DNA from: Paragordius varius
Lineage: Eukaryota; Animalia; Nematomorpha
NCBI GenBank assembly: GCA_964247055.1
Contig: OZ176055.1
Location: 7,254,001-7,318,000, forward strand
Direction of reading: 5' to 3'
DNA length: 64,000 nt
The notes under the pieces are model-generated. The model was not told the origin of the DNA, searched no databases, and saw nothing but the letters and a program-made list of their open reading frames with translations. Numbering within the stretch: position 1 is the first letter of the stretch; the number at the start of each line of letters is the position of its first letter. A program made the translations under genes and the position numbers. Of the stretch, positions 3,406 to 47,149 are shown piece by piece.

Positions 3406-6400
3406 ATGACACTACCCATCAAGAAAAAGAGCAACAAGAATCCCTCGTTTTTTAGCCATGAATTTGTAATTCAAAATCATGCTGATATATTGTCTTGTGT
3501 TCTTATGATATTTATAGTGGCTCTGTATTTTCAAGTATTTTAAAATTAAATTTTAGGTATCTAAACCTTTTGGATCAACTTTTGTTGCCCTTAATCATAA
3601 TATGACTGTAAATGTTACTCAAGACGGTGAAACGTTTGAAGATTATTATTCCAATTATACGACGGGCATGAAAGATACTTGTTTTGTCTTCTTTTATCTT
3701 ATAACTTTTATAATTTATCATGCTGTTATTCAGGAGTACATTCTTGATGTAAGAATTTATGTAAATATGTTTTTTAGAAATCGAATAAGAAACTTCATTT
3801 ATCAAAAGTGAAAACTAGCAAATTTAATGAATCGGGGGGATTGTTGGCATTTTATTTACCTTTCCTTGCCTTTGCAATTTATCTCATATCTCAAGTTTGC
3901 ACACCAATCTTTTTTATATATAATAAAATTTTTATTTTATAAGTTAATTACAATAGATTTCACAAAGTTTGGATCATAAAAACTTTTTTTATTTTAAGTT
4001 TTTGCAATTTTAATAGAGTTGCCAATTTTTGGTTTTTTTAATCTCTCACAAATTTAGATTTGCCGAATATTTTTTGGATTTCCACATTAAATTAAATATA
4101 ATATGTTTAGGGTTTTGTTAAGCGCCTATCTGATCTCTGGAGCCATTATCCAACGCTTATATTACCCTGGAATGCTAAATTATTCTTTCTTCTACAAGTA
4201 ACAAATTTTTATTTAAAATATAAAATTTTATTTTATAGATTATTATTTATCACTATTTTATGTTTTATAGATTGCGGCTTGGTTACACTTTTTACCCGAA
4301 TTGTATTTCCAAAAAATACCGAAAGTATAATTAACATTTTTTTTATTAATTAATAAATTTAATTTTCGAATAATATTTTGTTAATCATTAGGATGAATGG
4401 GATGCCCGTTGTCTTTATATAGCTCTCTATGCCATTTTCATAAGCGCTGCTTATATATTGAAGTAATTAATATTTATTGTTTATATAAAGTTTTTTGACT
4501 TAATATATCATTTTTATTACAATTTATAATTTCAAACATCAAATATTGATATTTTCTGTATAAAATACTGTATTTATACAATTTATAAATTCAAAATTGA
4601 TATTTTCTGTATTTAAATGTAAAATATATGCATTTATATTTAAATTTTACCTATTATTTCTCTTTATAACATTAAAGGGTTAAAATCTTTTATGTCTGAT
4701 TCACATTTAATTTTTTTTTAGATAAAATATATTAATAATCTTTATGGCGTGTTTAGTTTCACAAAGCTTGGACTTATTCTCATTATACTGCAATACTTTG
4801 AACAAAGTTTATATCACATGGCTCGTATCCTTTATTTTGCTGGGAAGGAAAAATTTGCCAAATATAGGTAACGCTTTTATCTAAAAACATACAGTAAAAA
4901 TTAAAAAAAGCTTAAAAAGTTTAAGGACATTTTTCCAAAATATATTATGTTTTTTCTTAAAACCTATCGTTTCGAGTCAAATAAAAAAAATAGTAAAATT
5001 GGTAATATATACATATATATATATTTACCAATTTAGTTGTTTCATTATAACCTTTTTTTTACTGGAGATACTTTTTTTACTAAAATATATCGTTAAAATC
5101 CCAAAAATATTTTTTAAATCTTCTATAATATATTGTTCGCATTTTTTAGTTAATTTTTTATATTAGCTTTATGGTTTGGGATGGTGTATTTATTATAACG
5201 CGCTTTTTAACCGTCATGCTTGTTATCCTTTGTAACCAATTTTTGGCGAAGAGTGCTGTGTCACATATTGATTGGGGCCGAGGGAATTTTAATGTCACTT
5301 TATTAAGGTATTATTTTTTTGCGCATTTGCTAAAATAAAAGTTGAGTTTTTAATCCTTACAATATTTTAAAGATTTTATACTGTGGAAACCATTAATCAA
5401 AAAGGGCAATTGTTTAACAAAAATAATTGCTGTTTTTATCAATGTTAGATGTGATTTAAATAAGAACTAGCTTTAATTTTAGCTGTAAAATTAAATAAAA
5501 ACGATATTTTGCAAAAATGATGTAAAATAAGAATGGCCTCGAAGTAGTTTAATATGAAACTTTTTTTCACACTCAGTTTTATTTAAATATATTAAAGATT
5601 TCATACAGTGAAAATTAATAATCAAAAAGAGCAATTCTTTAACCGAAAAAATTGTAGGTAGAAAATAACCGTTTTTTAAAATTGCATTTAAGTTAGATGA
5701 TTTTGTTCTTTATTTAAGATTTTAAATGAATCTGAATATTTACCAAAAATACATATAAATAATAAGCTTTTGTTATACGCCTTTTTTAACATTCTACAGA
5801 AATATTATCAATTTACCAGATAAAACAATTGCAAAATTAATTTGCAGCAGAGAAATATCTTTAAAACCACAATTTCAAAACTGCTCCCCAAAAAGCTAAT
5901 CGTTTTTTTGCTTCCAATCTTTCCTGTTTACGATATTTTAAAGCATAGTTTCACATATCTATGATTTAGATTACCATTGATGGGTATTTTTGGGTTTTTA
6001 CAAGTCTGGATGGTTTCCAAATTTTTCACTTTTTACTTTAAACGTATGCGTGAAAATAACCAATTATTGATATCATCATCATCAACAAGTTCGAAACATT
6101 ACTCCATGTTAAATGCGAATAGTTCTGGAACCGGTTCTGTTACTAAAGGGAAAAAAATCAAGTCCAACAACACACCAAATATGTTTTCTTGGCTAACGTC
6201 AACACTTTTTCCTTCGCCTCAAAGTATGACACTATTTTTATTTAATGATTTTTTGAAATCTTATAAATTATATATTTAATTTTGTGAAAAACACAAAATG
6301 TTTATATCATTTAAAGTTATTCCAAAAAATAATTGATATTTGCGATGTAAAAAAGTAGATTTATTTATTCAAAGCATTTGAAATATAATTATATTATCTC

Positions 6401-7666
6401 AACTATTCAGGAAAATAACAGTCAGATGTTTTTAGAAATAAGAACAAAAAATTGTCTTTAATTGCAAAAATAGCCCGCATTAAGGTTTGATTAGTTAAAT
6501 TTGATAACATTAAAATTTACAATATAGAAAGCAGTGGACCTGGAAAACGCCTTCAAGACTCTAATACAGCTAAATTGAAGCAGACGGCTAAAACTCCGGG
6601 TATGTGAGACTTTCTCTTTTTTATTCAAACAATTTTTACATCGAATTTGACGGCGTTTATACATAATTTTAGAAATAATGTAAAATAAAATACATTAGCT
6701 ATTTCACTGGAGGAAACAGGCTTGTAAATACTATCATATTTTAATCCTTTCAATATAATTATATGAATATAGCTGTGAAATATAAAGTTTTGAATTTTTT
6801 ACAGCATACTTGATTTTACAATCATTATAACCGTTGTAGTTGTAATTAGAAAATATTCAAAAAGGTGCTTTCAAAAATATACAGTTATTGAAATTTTACG
6901 GACAAAACATAAAAAAATAAAGACAAATATTATTTTATAAAAGACAAACAATACTTTTTAAAACGATAATTTTCCTATATAATATTACAATTCTGAAATT
7001 TATATTTTATATTCTATTTCACACTTTGCAATTTGTAACAATGATTTATATTTGTCTATCTTTTTATATTTTGTCCGTATAATATTAATTTTTACTGTAT
7101 CTATTTTTTTTCATTTATAGCATCATCCAATGTTAATAATTATCATGGATCTTCTTCTCAAGTCGATTCCGCAGGTTTAAAGAAACGGACCAAAGATAAC
7201 TCTTCAAAAACCAATGGAACTCCAAATACTCCTACTTCTGCAACGGGAAAACATAGTTTGCAAATATCTTTTTTAAATTAATACTTTTGTGATGTTTTAT
7301 ATTATTTTCAAATATCTTTAAACGCCTTTTTAAAGTTTTTAAAAATCTTTAAATTGTTTAAACATAGCCAACAATTGTATTATATTATTATTTCTAAGCT
7401 AATTACATTATCACTCATTAAACCGAAAATTGATGTTTAAAAACGTTTTAAACTAAAAACTATGAAGACACTTTCTTTTAAAACTGATATTAGCGGTATT
7501 TAATATGTCTATAAAATCATGAATAAAACTTTTTTGGTATTATTTTATAGTAGAAAAATTTGAAATTTTTATTTGTAAAAGTTACTTTTTAATTGTTTTA
7601 GATAAAACAGTAAATGGTACTGGAATGAATTCTACAAACACGCGATCCGCCAAAAAAGTTAAATAA
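3406..7666 (+). CDS. TRAM1: Translocating chain-associated membrane protein (TRAM1/2 family, TLC domain), 12 exons
   Basis: Exons 3406-3534, 3557-3748, 3778-3894, 4111-4197, 4271-4324, 4392-4462, 4757-4867, 5167-5307, 5970-6223, 6528-6599, 7121-7255, 7602-7666; all GT-AG and in phase. Family motifs SHEFVIQNHADILSC, HAVIQEYILD, SKFNESG, WLHFLPELYFQK, GNFNV. The last three low-complexity exons rest on phase and splice sites only. Confidence 0.93.
5439..5568 (+). repeat. Dispersed repeat, second copy at 23645-23770
   Basis: tcaatgttagatgt.atttaaataa...acgatattttgcaaaaa...gtaaaataa.aatggc.tcgaag.agtt..a.atgaaactttttt in both places. Confidence 0.75.
6882..7097. mobile_element. Tc1/mariner-like MITE (TA|CAGT...ACTG|TA) in TRAM intron 10
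   Basis: About 45-bp imperfect TIRs containing tacggacaaaa and ttttgtccgta; a partial second copy starts at 55042. Confidence 0.65.
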
Positions 7667-14657: not shown

Positions 14658-16132
14658 GGCCCATGTGAATGAGCCAGTTGAGCAGGCTCATTCACCACTT
14701 TTAATGATCCAGGTGAATGAGCCTTCCTCATCCTGTTGAGATGGAGGAATTTTTAATCCTGGTTTTTTCAGGATTAAGCTTGTTACAAAAGCCGATATCA
14801 TGAGAACTAGGAAGAATTTTTGGAATCTGGAAACTGTATTAGCCTTAAAAAGGTATATTTAATATATGTATATGGTAGGTTTTGGAAATTTTGGACATGG
14901 ATTAAAAAATATTTTTCGGGCAAATGCTTACTAAAGGTTAGATGCTTTATTTTTATATATTTAGGCAATAAATGGTAGTTAGTTCGAGTTTATAAGCAAG
15001 TTTAACTGAATATTTAGAAAATCATCGTATAACTACTGATATGTTTTTTCAAGGATTTAGAATAAGCCATCAAATAATTCTTTTCTCACTTGAAACCATT
15101 CTAAATAGTAAAATAATCAGGAATACTATCGAGTATTTTAAATTTGGTTTATTTTAGACATGAAACTCATTAATGATAATCGGAGTTTTCGGTAATACAT
15201 ATTTCTATAAAAGCGATAGGTAACATTGACGAAAATGAGTTAGCAAACTTTTATCAGAAGATCAGACAACACCTATATTGAATAGCCATCAGACAGGAGT
15301 AGATCGGAGAAACAAAATTTGACATAATTTTATTTATAATTTATTTTTACACAATAAATGAATATATTTTATAAATGTATTATTGGTTTGGCTCAGTTAT
15401 TGGGATTCCATGGATTAATTTACGATATATGTCTCTATCATTTGTTGCGTTTCGAGGTATGTTCAAGAATTTAAAGTCTTATTCTATGATTTGAGTCCAA
15501 GTTGTTTTAGGCCTCCCTTTTCGGTTAAGAACAGGGATCTGTAAATCAAGAATTTCTTTTGCAGGTGAGTCTATACTGGATCTCTCTATGTGTCTAAAAT
15601 ACCGAAGTCTATTTGTTCTGATTAAAGCTTTTATTGGTTCTAGTTCAATGGTAGAATTTATCATCACATAGCATTTTGTCTTCCGTTCTTTTCAATCTCG
15701 ATTCTAATGTTTTTGTGATTGCCCAATTTAAATATTGATCATTTCTTCGACTAAAGCCTCCTAGACCTTAAGCTTTTAGTCATTGCAGAATTTATTTACG
15801 GATTCATAAAGATGCACAGATATCTCGAATTTAGACAAAACTTTAAGACCCGCATATAAATCGCGTGTAACTGTTTTCATCATATTGATAAAAATACAAA
15901 TCAGGCCTTCGCCATTGCTAAATTTATTTACGATATTCATAAAGATGGATGTATATCTATATATTATTTGAACAAAATAACCTAAATAGCGTGTAGAACT
16001 GTTATCCATCATACTGATAAAAATTTTCAAAATTCCCACCTCAAAAACTCAATCACCTCCCTCAAACATATGCTTCCTCATAATCCATAATCCAGGTGAA
16101 TGAGCTTGAAAATTGGCTCATTCACATGGCCC
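14658..16132. mobile_element. TIR-bounded non-autonomous element (Harbinger-like ends) between SBP2 and ZCCHC9
   Basis: Left end ggcccatgtgaatgagcca (14658); right end tggctcattcacatggccc (ends 16132); 18/19 inverted match. Five GTGAATGAGC motifs cluster at the two ends. TSD is ambiguous (possibly TTG). Confidence 0.6.
15377..15720 (-). mobile_element. RTE 3' fragment nested in the TIR element
   Basis: IRTNRLRYFRHIERS...RKGRPKTTWTQII (ORF 15667-15479); the 3' part is shared with 39071-39202. Confidence 0.8.
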
Positions 16133-16143
16133 TTGATGTACCA

Positions 16144-17742
16144 ATGAAAATAAATGCATCATCTCAAAAACCGAAATCAAAATTTAAAAAGGGGGTGTTT
16201 TTTTGCTTTAAATTATTATAATCAAATTTTATATATTTCGCCTTGACTTTTTGGTGTGCGGTACCGGCTTATGCAACCATGGATTCCCATCCAGGCTAGA
16301 ATGCAATCTATGACAATGTTGGATAGTGGCTGTGCGCTAGCTTAGCTAATGGGGCGGATTGGGAAGATTGATACAGTGCTCTGGAGATTGCGCAGATCCA
16401 ATAGCTTCTCAATAGGACATGGCTGTTTGATCTTTCCGTAGAATGATGGCACCAACTACACTATACAATCTTCTGCAAGGGTCTCCTACCGGGCTCTACG
16501 ATAACCTCACTGTATGCCTTTGCCATTCCCGGCATAATTATAGGAGCGCTTGGGGATGTCGCGTCTGGTAGGCAGAATTGTCTTTGCAGACATTGTGTAG
16601 CAGTTTGGATGTAGCCTTAACAGATAAGACTTTTTTGATTACCTTTATTAACTTATTGTTTGTTTTATAAACTTTAACTTATCCATAATTGACATTTATT
16701 GATTTAATTTAAGCCAATTGGCCTTAAACTATAATTTAATATGGATCTCGTTTGCTTTAACTTTGCCAGACATTAAATTTTATTTAGTATCTTCCCTGCT
16801 TAGCTTTGATTTATTCTATTTTTGGACAAAATATTTTTGGTTTATTATGAATTTACTATTGCATCAATTAATTTATTACCGTTGTATGACTTTCAATTTT
16901 GAAAATCGCTTTTATGCTTATCTCACTATTTAATTCGTTTTCGTGTCATATCGTAAAAAATTTTAATTCGATAACTCGCTTGCCATTTGTCATTTTTAGA
17001 TTTTAATTCATCGTCATAAATCATAATTGATTGGAGCGCCTTGTTTATATCGATTATTTACACATTTAGTTTATCATATATATGTTTAGTATTATACGTT
17101 CCATTGCATATGTTTGTTAGAAGCCGTGAAGAATGATTGACGTCCCGCTGCCCTGAGGCGTGTAAAAGCGTAGGAAGGCGGTAAGGGTCGTCCTGTGCGG
17201 ACAGTGACGGTACGGAGCAAGCCTGTCACACCCTTTTCTGGATACCTGGATTTAAAAAGGGGATCAATAAACGTGAATTTAGGCGGCTTAAACGCATAAA
17301 CCAGAGGACAGAGAATATTGTATGATATTGTTTAATAAGTTTTTAGAAATGTTTTAAATGTCGTCAGTTAGGCCACCTAATGTCAGAGTGCGAAACTGCA
17401 ATCAATGAATCCAAATCATCGGGGATGATTGAGGACGATTGTTATGATATATGTTATAAATGCGGTAGCCTTGAACACAAATCCAGTAATTGCAATCAAA
17501 AAGTAATCGGATATCCTTACGCAAAATGTTTTATATGCAATCAAATCGGCCATATTTCCAAAAATTGTGTACAAAATACTAATGGTATTTATCCAGATGG
17601 TGGTTTTTGTCTTTATTGTGAGCAAAAGGATCACCTAAAAAAAGATTGTCCACAAATAAAAAACAAATTGGATTCCGGACCTCAAACTGCTTCTGGCACC
17701 AACACAAGAGTGAAAAAAATCAAAAAAGTTGTTAAGCTGTAG
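16144..17742 (+). CDS. ZCCHC9: CCHC zinc-knuckle protein, ZCCHC9-like (four knuckles)
   Basis: Exons 16144-16194, 17260-17319, 17347-17742. REFRRLKR, CFKCRQLGHLMSEC, CYKCGSLEHKSSNC, YPYAKCFICNQIGHISKNC and GIYPDGGFCLYCEQKDHLKKDCP follow the ZCCHC9 pattern. Exon 1 is inferred from the 13-bp direct repeat and frame. Confidence 0.85.
16195..17249. mobile_element. Unclassified 1055-bp insertion flanked by a perfect 13-bp direct repeat
   Basis: atttaaaaagggg at 16182-16194 and 17250-17262. GC-rich blocks at about 16250-16620 and 17120-17250. No TIRs or LTRs recognised. Confidence 0.7.
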
Positions 17743-17963
17743 CGTTAATAAATATTAATTATATGTAATTTTAATATATCCATTTTTTGGTCTAGCGAAA
17801 CCGTTATCGGTTTAAGCCAACCTCTGTACTATTCCACATTTATTCATAAAAAAAACTAAATCTTTCCAATTTAGAACTTTTTTTCAGCCAAAGAATTTTA
17901 CCTCTCCTATCTTTTTTGGCCAAATGGTCCCATTTACAGATTAGATAATTCGATACAATAAGA

Positions 17964-18126
17964 GAGTAGCGTATGGCATAAAACAATGTTAGTCCATAAA
18001 AGAATAAAATATTGTTTTTTAAAACAATGGGATATTATGGATATGTGTGTATACAACCAGGCTTTTTTTAAAAAAACATTTTTTATTATTTTATACACTA
18101 ATAATGTTTTATGCCATACTCTACTG
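17964..18126. mobile_element. Small MITE
   Basis: agtag.gtatggcataaaaca.t.ttagt inverted at the two ends. Confidence 0.55.
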
Positions 18127-21100
18127 TATATAACCATAAAATATAACATCACATTTATTATGCCCTACTATCCTCTATATCTAAAACTGTGGTAGTCGTA
18201 TCGCGACCCTCTGGCCACATGCGGCTTAAAAGAACAATTGTCAATTGTTATCACTTAATTATTTTTTTTATTAAATGATTATTTAGAAATACATATAATC
18301 GATAAATTTGAGATTTCGATATAATTTTGGTATTTATTATTTTTTTCTATTATGAAATGAAATATGGAAAATGTAATTTCTTTGGTATCCGCTTTTCACA
18401 TAAAAAAGCTATACCGTAAGCTTCATAAGAATTTCTTATATTTTATAATATTAAATCTTTTGCCGATGCGAGCATGTAAGCGGTTTCACCCTTAACCAAA
18501 TTATGGCTTAATTTAAGTGCGCGACAAATTGAATGTCTGTTAAATTTATTTTCAAGCGAAATGTTGGAAATATTTTAGCTCACCTATCAGTAGAACTGAT
18601 ATTAGTTCCACACCATAAGGTTCAATATTCTGTTTAAGTGAAATGTCTAAAAGTTACCAATGAACAAAAGCTGGTAATGATTTTGCTCAATTGGCACTTT
18701 TATCTTTAAAAAATTGGTTGCTTACGGTTTTTTTCATTTGAAAATATATAAAATTTACACAACCTTAATCCTTTCTTTTCATTAAAATACAAGATTTCCG
18801 AATCAATAATTAAAACTGTTGTGGAAGGTGTTTTAAGTCTTAGTAGATTCTAAGTTTTTAAAAAAATAATCTCAATGAATTCTTGTGATTTGGCCTGAGA
18901 AGGGCTTTAAATAATTTCGTGTTTAAAGACATGAAATATTCTAAATTTTTAAGTAAAAAAGTATATTATCAATAATAAATTGTGAGTTGTCTTGGCTTAT
19001 CTTTTCCACATTTCTCATAAATCAAATGTTTAAATAGACGTCTTTAAGGTGATAACATTTTCGAAAATCAAATATAAATGTTTGATGAAAAATTATTAAC
19101 ATATTAAGTTATTATAATATCTATTTCCGAGACTTAAAATACTCAAGAAAAACATATGAAAACTGCCATATCAACTCGATTGATAATTATTTAACATTTG
19201 TATTTAATGAGATAAAATTCCGATTAGATATTTAAAAATATTAAAAAATCCTTAAAACTCGTTGTAAATCCATGGCATATGGATATGTCAAATATAACGT
19301 AACTTGTGCAATTTTCGATCATCCGCATAATGAAAAATTAAAATATTCAAATTTAGAAGCTACACGGAAAATCTGAAATGTAAGAGCTACATCGAAGCAT
19401 GTCCCAATTACATATAAAAGTTCTCAAGATTTTACTGTTTTCCCATCAACTTATACATGCGCTGTTTAAAAATGAAACATGTTAAAATGTATCAAAATCG
19501 TCTAGAACAGCGTATTAAGATTGGCCTGTCATAATGCTAAACCAGATTTCTTTCGATAAAGATTAAAATATGTCCACTTATAAGATATTTGTCGTATTAT
19601 AAGGTACACGGCCTTTAAGACTAAATAATCTATTATTCGGATCGTCATATTTTTTAATTAATACCTCTGGTTTAAAAATACATATTCTTTTATAATGGAA
19701 ACAATAATAAAATATTTACATTGTATTAGATAACATATATTTTTGGAAGCGCGGTTTTGGACCTTTATAACAATTTATGGCTTAAAAAGTCAAGACACAA
19801 AAACTCTTAAATAGATTCCCAGATATAATGTTTTATTCCTCTTTCAGGAGTAACATTGGACCACACTTAGCATAAAAAGATATTTGTTCCAATTATCATT
19901 GGTAGGTAACTAAATGTTATTAGAACTTTTTCTATAAATAACGACAAAGAATATTCAAATATTAGAGCTATTTAGTCAAGAAAAAAATATTGATAATTTT
20001 ATTAAGTATTGGATATATTCTTGTATAATATAATGTGACCAAACATAGTTTGACGCAATACAACATTAAAACATAATTTGCCTCTTTTTACACCATTGGG
20101 TGGTATATTACACAGTTTCTACAAAAATATCATGATAATATATATATATATATATATATACTTGTTGTACCCAAGTGTTAAAGTCATAATTCTTTTGGCT
20201 CTTTTAAAATGAAGTGTTTTATTAAAATAAACGCAAAATTCCCTTAAATATATACTAAATTTTGATATCAACTAAATATATATTTCAAAAAATGCATACT
20301 TTCAAAAATTTAATTTTTAGCATTTGTTGAAGCATTCATACTATTTTGACCATGATGGAAACGATATAAACGGTGGAGATGTTATAAAATTTTATATATA
20401 TTATTTGATGATGCTATCTCAATCAGAATTGATTGAAATATTCGTTCTTTTCCAAAAATTTACCAAAATTTGCAAGCAACCAAACTTTTAAAATAAAATT
20501 CTGAATGTTCGACATCATCCTGTTTAGAAAACATGTTTTATTAATTTTAGAAGGTTATGCCGTTTCCATCATGCTTCAAAATCGTTAAAAGTACGCTAAC
20601 AAAATATCAAATTTGTTTATGCAAAAAAATATGAAACTAATAAAATTTAACGTTTATGAAAAAAATTTAGTTATATCATACCTCCCACCATTTAAGTTTG
20701 AATAACAACTCTTTATTTTTACGAAAAAAGGTTATTTCGAAATCATATGCCATATATAATAAATTTTAATAATAGTTACGGGAATAACAATTTTCGAAAT
20801 AATTTTCTGTATATAACAAAAATGAACTAAACTGATCAAACATTTATTAAAATATAAATTAATTTTGTTATTTTTAATTTTGAGACACCTCTTTTTGCGG
20901 AAGCCCTGAGTGAAAGAGCCATTAGTCTGAATCTTACAGTGGAGTACGTGATTTATAGTTACGCCACTGCGCGAAAGGCTGCAATCATAGACGGTTTGAC
21001 TGATCCATAATTTAATTGATGTATGATTTGAGCAGAAAATAAAATATTAACCAATTCTTAAATTTTTAATGCAAAAAGAACCATTCTTTACTAATTATGG

Positions 21101-25341: not shown

Positions 25342-47149
<21,808 letters not shown>

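Follow-up and report, generated by a model that had tools for sequence, protein, structure and literature searches.

Exonic insertions of Ds/dSpm in maize and of Tc1 in C. elegans can be partly spliced out through fortuitous GT and AG dinucleotides, which results in leaky alleles. New introns flanked by direct repeats have reportedly been found in Daphnia populations (Li et al. 2009, Science), where they are ascribed to double-strand-break repair with unique filler. Introners and other transposon-derived introns (Gozashti et al. 2022, PMC9860276; reviewed in PMC11282704) are established, with 1,093 introner families reported from 201 species; non-LTR retrotransposons account for about 5% of the confidently classified introner examples (Gozashti et al. 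2025, PMC12130899).

The exon interruption described here shares traits with all three. Like an introner, it is a transposable element in an exon, with one candidate splice site from the element and the other from the target or its duplicate; like the Ds/dSpm and Tc1 alleles, it is an apparently fresh exonic insertion with GT and AG at or near its ends; and like the new introns of Daphnia, it is a lineage-specific, possibly polymorphic interruption flanked by short direct repeats. Introners, however, are defined as families that have made many introns and whose splicing has been seen, and the Ds/dSpm and Tc1 alleles are DNA transposons with RNA experiments, whereas the present case is one retroposon-like copy, known from DNA alone, with weak candidate sites and an imperfect restoration that adds one codon. 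The Daphnia introns contain unique filler; the insert here is a copy of a dispersed family with a fixed 3′ terminus.

Our preferred reading, to which we give a probability of about 0.55, is that target-primed reverse transcription placed a copy of a non-autonomous, non-LTR-type retroposon (1055 bp, in the gene's orientation) 17 codons past the start of a single-copy ZCCHC9 homologue, within its first coding exon, and that this event duplicated 13 bp of the target. The insertion would be young and probably still segregates alongside an empty allele. Full protein could be made only if 16195-17259 were spliced out; with weak sites at the boundaries and stronger cryptic ones inside, the allele would most likely be broken or strongly weakened, in-frame spliced transcripts being a minority at best.

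Duplication and Family Terminus

The 13-mer ATTTAAAAAGGGG occurs as two exact copies, at 16182-16194 and 17250-17262, in the window (the whole 64-kb stretch of DNA analysed), and a search of the window with one mismatch allowed found no third. The features of the locus are as follows.

16144-16194, plus strand: putative first coding segment of 17 codons, MKINASSQKPKSKFKKG (open frame)
16182-16194, plus strand: left copy of the target-site duplication (exact 13-mer match)
16195-17249, plus strand: insert, a non-coding copy of a dispersed-repeat family (contig depth; no Pfam, tRNA or Rfam match)
16195-17259, plus strand: candidate new intron, 1065 nt (donor GGG/GTGTTT, acceptor TTTAAAAAG/GGG)
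16553-17137, plus strand: variable middle of the insert (missing in at least one other family copy)
17138-17251, plus strand: high-copy 3′ tail module (depth; pieces in runs X6 and X7, loose ends in run X2)
17250-17262, plus strand: right copy of the target-site duplication (exact 13-mer match, family 3′ end)
17263-17319, plus strand: coding continuation INKREFRRLKRINQRTENI (tblastn with P0001; N-terminal flanks of orthologues)
17320-17346, plus strand: 27-nt micro-intron, GTATGA...TTTTTAG, with two in-frame stops (gap in the tblastn alignment)
17347-17742, plus strand: last exon, with four intact CCHC knuckles, a basic C-terminus and a stop (Pfam zf-CCHC)

An earlier note, made by reading the sequence, had described this geometry, and its description held: the two repeats are exact and the sole copies in the window, the 1055 bp between them begin with GT (16195-16196), and the right copy carries AG at 17258-17259. 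Its statements about the reading frame were also borne out. Deletion of the insert and one repeat leaves the frame from ATG 16144 open into INKREFRRLKRINQRTENI and thus into the ZCCHC9 homologue, and excision of 16195-17259 preserves the frame with one extra GGG codon (Gly).

By itself, a 13-bp repeat is weak evidence of a target-site duplication; the window (27.7% GC) contains, as a control for chance, 96 pairs of exact direct repeats of at least 13 nt lying 200-3000 nt apart, 4 of them with at least 4 G/C. This repeat is convincing because its right copy falls within 2 nt of the fixed 3′ end of a dispersed family. The first two bases of that copy (AT) are possibly the element's last two, a microhomology; the duplication is perfect at 13 bp, or 11 bp if AT is assigned to the element.

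Evidence for the family comes from Logan contigs of four public DNA-like runs, labelled as four organisms and all behaving as DNA, which were aligned to 15200-18600. Depth in X1, the deepest run, is about 220-630 in the unique flanks, about 3,500-6,500 in the body of the insert (6-10 times single copy), about 13,600 at 16454-16567 (about 22 times) and about 125,600 at 17138-17251, against about 600 for single copy (roughly 200-fold). These depths indicate roughly 6-10 copies of the body and about 200 of the tail. One X1 contig links 16552 straight to 17138, with 70 nt on its shorter side. Tail pieces of other copies in X6 and X7 begin at 17102, 17144, 17144, 17155 and 17163; their ends fall at 17243-17252, with three at 17251/17252, and unrelated sequence follows; X2 contributes seven loose ends behind 17251. 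In these public DNA contigs, the 5′ starts of family copies vary and the 3′ end is constant, and the insert belongs to this dispersed family; the window contains no further copy of it.

The variable 5′ starts, single 3′ end, 13-bp duplication and A/T-rich target together point to retroposition by target-primed reverse transcription, and the fixed 3′ end with variable 5′ starts would place the element in the same orientation as the gene. It is very likely that this is a real insertion of young, retroposon-type origin, its youth being suggested by the perfect duplication. The evidence indicates a non-LTR retroposon, of a kind with no poly(A) and no autonomous partner found. The likeness to 5′-truncated LINEs and SINEs integrated by target-primed reverse transcription extends to a duplication within their variable 7-20 bp range, an A/T-rich target, variable 5′ and constant 3′ ends, and the 2-nt AT microhomology between target and insert end. 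The insert differs from them in its 3′ end, which reads CTGGATACCTGGAT and has neither poly(A) nor a simple-repeat tail, and in having no tRNA, 5S or 7SL head and no reverse-transcriptase remnant. Its ends are 42-49% GC and its middle is AT-rich (25%).

Searches for other signatures were negative. No tRNA, SINE head, ribozyme or other Rfam family was found in 15000-19000; Pfam searches matched no protein remnant in the insert or the upstream repeat, and in particular no reverse-transcriptase remnant in the insert; no inverted or direct repeat pair links the insert's two ends; the 3′ tail folds no better than shuffled sequence on either strand; no LINE sharing the tail is present in the window; and an exon-2 word and the element tail both drew a blank in metagenome scans.

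The earlier note had pointed to the new introns described in Daphnia, which are ascribed to filler DNA captured during staggered double-strand-break repair, leaving short flanking repeats with no transposition. Short direct repeats do lie on either side of the insert, but captured filler does not fit a family member whose 3′ terminus is the canonical one, shared by hundreds of copies with differing 5′ starts; we give this mechanism hardly any credence.

The ZCCHC9 Homologue

ZCCHC9 is conserved across animals. The coding part of the last exon (17347-17739) is 44-57% identical to ZCCHC9-named proteins, and the gene matches the ZCCHC9 family profile (E=1.3e-36) and, in four stretches of the last exon, Pfam zf-CCHC (E=2.5e-18). 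The characters of the family are present, namely four CCHC knuckles in family spacing, an RExRRxKR block before them and a basic C-terminus; INKREFRRLKRINQRTENI corresponds by homology to the basic RExRRLKR stretch that, in ZCCHC9, lies before the first zinc knuckle. A word search with exon 3 yielded two matches at 49% identity, and the best identity in an exhaustive search of family representatives was 57%. Two protein libraries, with a wider search through P0001, yielded only distant ZCCHC9s where a close hairworm orthologue was sought. The homologue appears to be single-copy here: the exon contig, at a depth of about 580-630 in X1, is at or above the other unique-flank contigs (about 220-250), which argues for about one copy.

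Two side observations concern exon 3. At 17570 the window has T (Val, GTA) where contigs of X1, X6 and X7 have A (Glu); T is a minority or private non-synonymous allele of the assembled individual, in the third-knuckle region. A contig of X7 (labelled organism D) covering 17344-17592 matches exon 3 over 249 nt, differing at 23 sites with gaps at 3 positions; it comes from a more distant relative or else from a second copy that has diverged.

The micro-intron provides a reference point for intron history. Its 27 nt are absent from all orthologues and fall one residue ahead of the first Cys. Precisely there, Lingula carries a phase-0 intron of 381 nt, and in an arthropod locus (L005) the first exon boundary falls within 1-2 residues of the position (intron about 1.2 kb). 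On this alignment, 17320-17346 is an ancient intron that has shrunk to 27 nt. The site of the insert has a different history. The earlier note had looked to orthologues lacking the insert, and all four distant ones compared, namely Lingula, the GenBank arthropod locus L005 and two rotifers (Brachionus and a contig from a metagenome), carry that site within a single exon; the interruption at 16195 is therefore lineage-specific.

The 17-codon segment upstream occupies a stretch of unique sequence, 62 nt long, with a repeat on either side. It shows no detectable match of its own to ZCCHC9 profiles, and its putative coding status derives from frame continuity. The first in-frame ATG of its open reading frame is at 16126, within the terminal inverted repeat of the upstream transposon, and 16144 is the first ATG located in unique sequence. 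Traced upstream, the frame of exon 2 meets a stop near 17182 and contains no ATG downstream of it, so that an upstream exon is required for the first zinc knuckle, consistent with the earlier note's remark that no other in-frame ATG lies near exon 2.

The same segment can be viewed as non-coding, with an old intron running from a hidden upstream exon to AAAAAG/GGG and the retroposon having duplicated that acceptor. Besides the segment's want of detectable homology, we estimate the chance of an open frame that long in this composition at about 0.06-0.2, which is only mildly unlikely, and the roughly 100 extra N-terminal residues of the orthologues (conserved as MTR[FWY]AR...) are absent from the six frames of the window in searches with three profiles (family, sub-family N-terminal and MTR-start). 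Against this view, the same three profiles detect no upstream ZCCHC9-like exon in 16 kb, the sole candidate, a mini-exon with an ATG at 14799, was rejected as out of phase, the acceptor is atypically weak for constitutive use, the four orthologues have no intron at the site, and equally short N-termini exist among some ZCCHC9 family representatives. We consider an old intron here improbable. A further candidate, VNELENWLIHM..., considered as a helical module of nematode-like relatives, failed the profile test.

Upstream of the segment lies a second repeat.

14658-16132, no strand assigned: upstream block with 22-nt inverted termini GGCCCATGTGAATGAGCCAGTT / AATTGGCTCATTCACATGGCCC (inverted pair, 91% complementary)

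The block ends at 16132, 11 nt before ATG 16144. Within it lie the remnant of a LINE-like ORF (15479-15667, minus strand) and repeats of about 131 bp at 15781-16024. Contig depth over 15200-16111 is 30-370 times single copy, and contig 9 of X2, from another copy of the block, departs from the window at 16133. The termini of the block carry GGCCCATGTGAATGAGCC..., and additional GTGAATGAGCC motifs lie close to both ends in either orientation. No evident duplication of the target flanks the block, which may be a single transposon or a pair of small palindromic MITEs. Exon 1 is not itself part of the 131-bp repeats. Just 3′ of the gene, at 17936-18163, is a very high-copy repeat (X1 depth up to about 350,000 versus about 600), in which several contigs with opposite-strand joints at about 18004-18084 suggest a fold-back or inverted-repeat element.

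These surroundings raise the question of whether the locus was already dispensable or dead, which would make the insertion mere neutral debris. A transposon terminus at 16132, the repeats throughout 15200-16111 and the absence of the orthologues' N-terminal module would suit a decaying gene. None of 13 public runs screened represents this region as RNA; for the small, RNA-labelled runs under the species label, the shared fraction of its words was 0.00. Decay is nevertheless very improbable, given a 131-codon frame that stays open despite 27.7% GC, retention of all 16 zinc ligands and of the YPYAKCFIC, GIYPDGG and HLKKDCP motifs, and an ancient intron still present with good sites.

Possible Filled and Empty Alleles

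The preferred reading of a young insertion into an otherwise intact gene allows for an empty allele in the population, and the ends of contigs at the locus bear on this. Contig 5 of X1 (171 nt, fully aligned, depth 632) terminates exactly at 17250, where a k=31 contig growing from the unique flank would be expected to run about 25 nt into the tail. A mixture of filled alleles (G before the duplication) and empty alleles (A before it) would produce the same break. The insertion is on the whole probably polymorphic, with both alleles coexisting, as judged from this one contig end, which a SNP at 17249 would break likewise. Contig 13 of X2 extends 11 nt into the insert; this length fits the filled allele and falls below the 31-nt rule for bridging.

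Splice Signals

The coding frame can be restored by few pairs of sites: acceptor 17259 with either donor 16195 or, ahead of the unique ATG, a GTACCA at 16138. A second in-frame acceptor, GAG at 17213, is poorer than 17259. For comparison, a local sample of splice sites was assembled by exon homology from a gene at 28.8-45 kb, with the donor of the micro-intron also counted. This gene occupies 28827-32256 and 42283-45137 on the plus strand and is presumably a ROCK-like (Rho-associated) kinase gene, resembling ROCK1. Its exons encode kinase, coiled-coil and C1-domain segments, and one exon is broken by long, low-complexity coding stretches rich in N, S and T.

The sample is small and comes from one window, with nine donors and eight acceptors. 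The donors are GTATGT, GTAAGT, GTATTT, GTAAAT, GTAAGA, GTAATA, GTGAGT, GTAAGA and GTATGA, that is, eight GTA and one GTGAGT, and all eight acceptors are [AT]TAG behind T-rich tracts. The candidate donor, GTGTTT, has G at +3 without a compensating AGT and is unlike all nine; the candidate acceptor, TTTAAAAAG before G, has A at -3 behind an A-rich tract and is unlike all eight. Within the insert there are better-looking acceptors at 16441, 16769, 16803 and 16999 and better-looking donors at 16512, 16884 and 17181. Because the boundary sites are weak for the local consensus and stronger cryptic sites lie inside, we infer poor splicing; clean removal of the insert would not be expected on such grounds, although the spliceosome of this lineage may be permissive. 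The joint 16194/17260 is not among the joints listed for the four DNA-like runs.

It is against this background that a newly gained spliceosomal intron must be weighed, one in which splicing proceeds efficiently between the element's GT and the AG within the duplicated target, one Gly is added and the gene remains functional. A GT at the very start of the insert and an in-frame AG within the duplication are what a transposon-made intron requires, and their precise position at the insert boundaries counts against the preferred reading. A functional intron would also account for the first zinc knuckle, for which there is no other in-frame ATG, and would agree with the absence of an intron at this site in Lingula, L005, Brachionus and the rotifer contig; transposon-derived introns are documented, some of them from non-LTR elements (PMC12130899). 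The broken-allele interpretation has a further difficulty, in that a homozygous ZCCHC9 knock-out might be costly.

Efficient use of these sites is nonetheless rather unlikely. The donor lacks A at +3, A at +4 and G at +5, a type absent from the nine local donors, and an AAG acceptor behind an A-rich tract is absent from the eight local acceptors; the stronger cryptic sites would compete from within the insert. The runs are all DNA-like, and no spliced or cDNA-like joint is among those listed. The perfect duplication and possible empty allele would have left selection little time for a test. The earlier note's proposal of a recent intron gain that rescued the gene is thus upheld in part: a transposed repeat with a duplication, target sequence reading as one continuous exon, intron-free orthologues and an in-frame GT...AG pair were all found, while rescue is disfavored by the poor sites and the better cryptic ones inside. 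The insert is probably not an established, efficiently removed intron, and we retain the reading of a young retroposon insertion producing a weak or null, probably segregating allele.

Significance

If the insert is not spliced, the locus would be a case of ordinary insertional mutagenesis in a conserved gene for a nucleolar zinc-knuckle protein, valuable mainly as a marker. It would also carry a caution, since an in-frame GT...AG pair around an exonic transposon is easily found and, alone, is no proof of intron gain.

The more consequential possibility, which we regard as doubtful, is that a spliceosomal intron has been caught at birth, as a polymorphic retroposon that uses its own GT and the AG of the duplication and leaves a one-codon scar. 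If it is spliced, the locus would provide a dated and mechanistically transparent birth of an intron from a retroposon in an animal, in which filled and empty alleles might be compared directly; such a case would be rare, as the introners documented so far are mostly DNA transposons of protists, algae and fungi. Should this be true, the hairworm-like lineage would offer an animal system in which transposons still drive the gain of introns.
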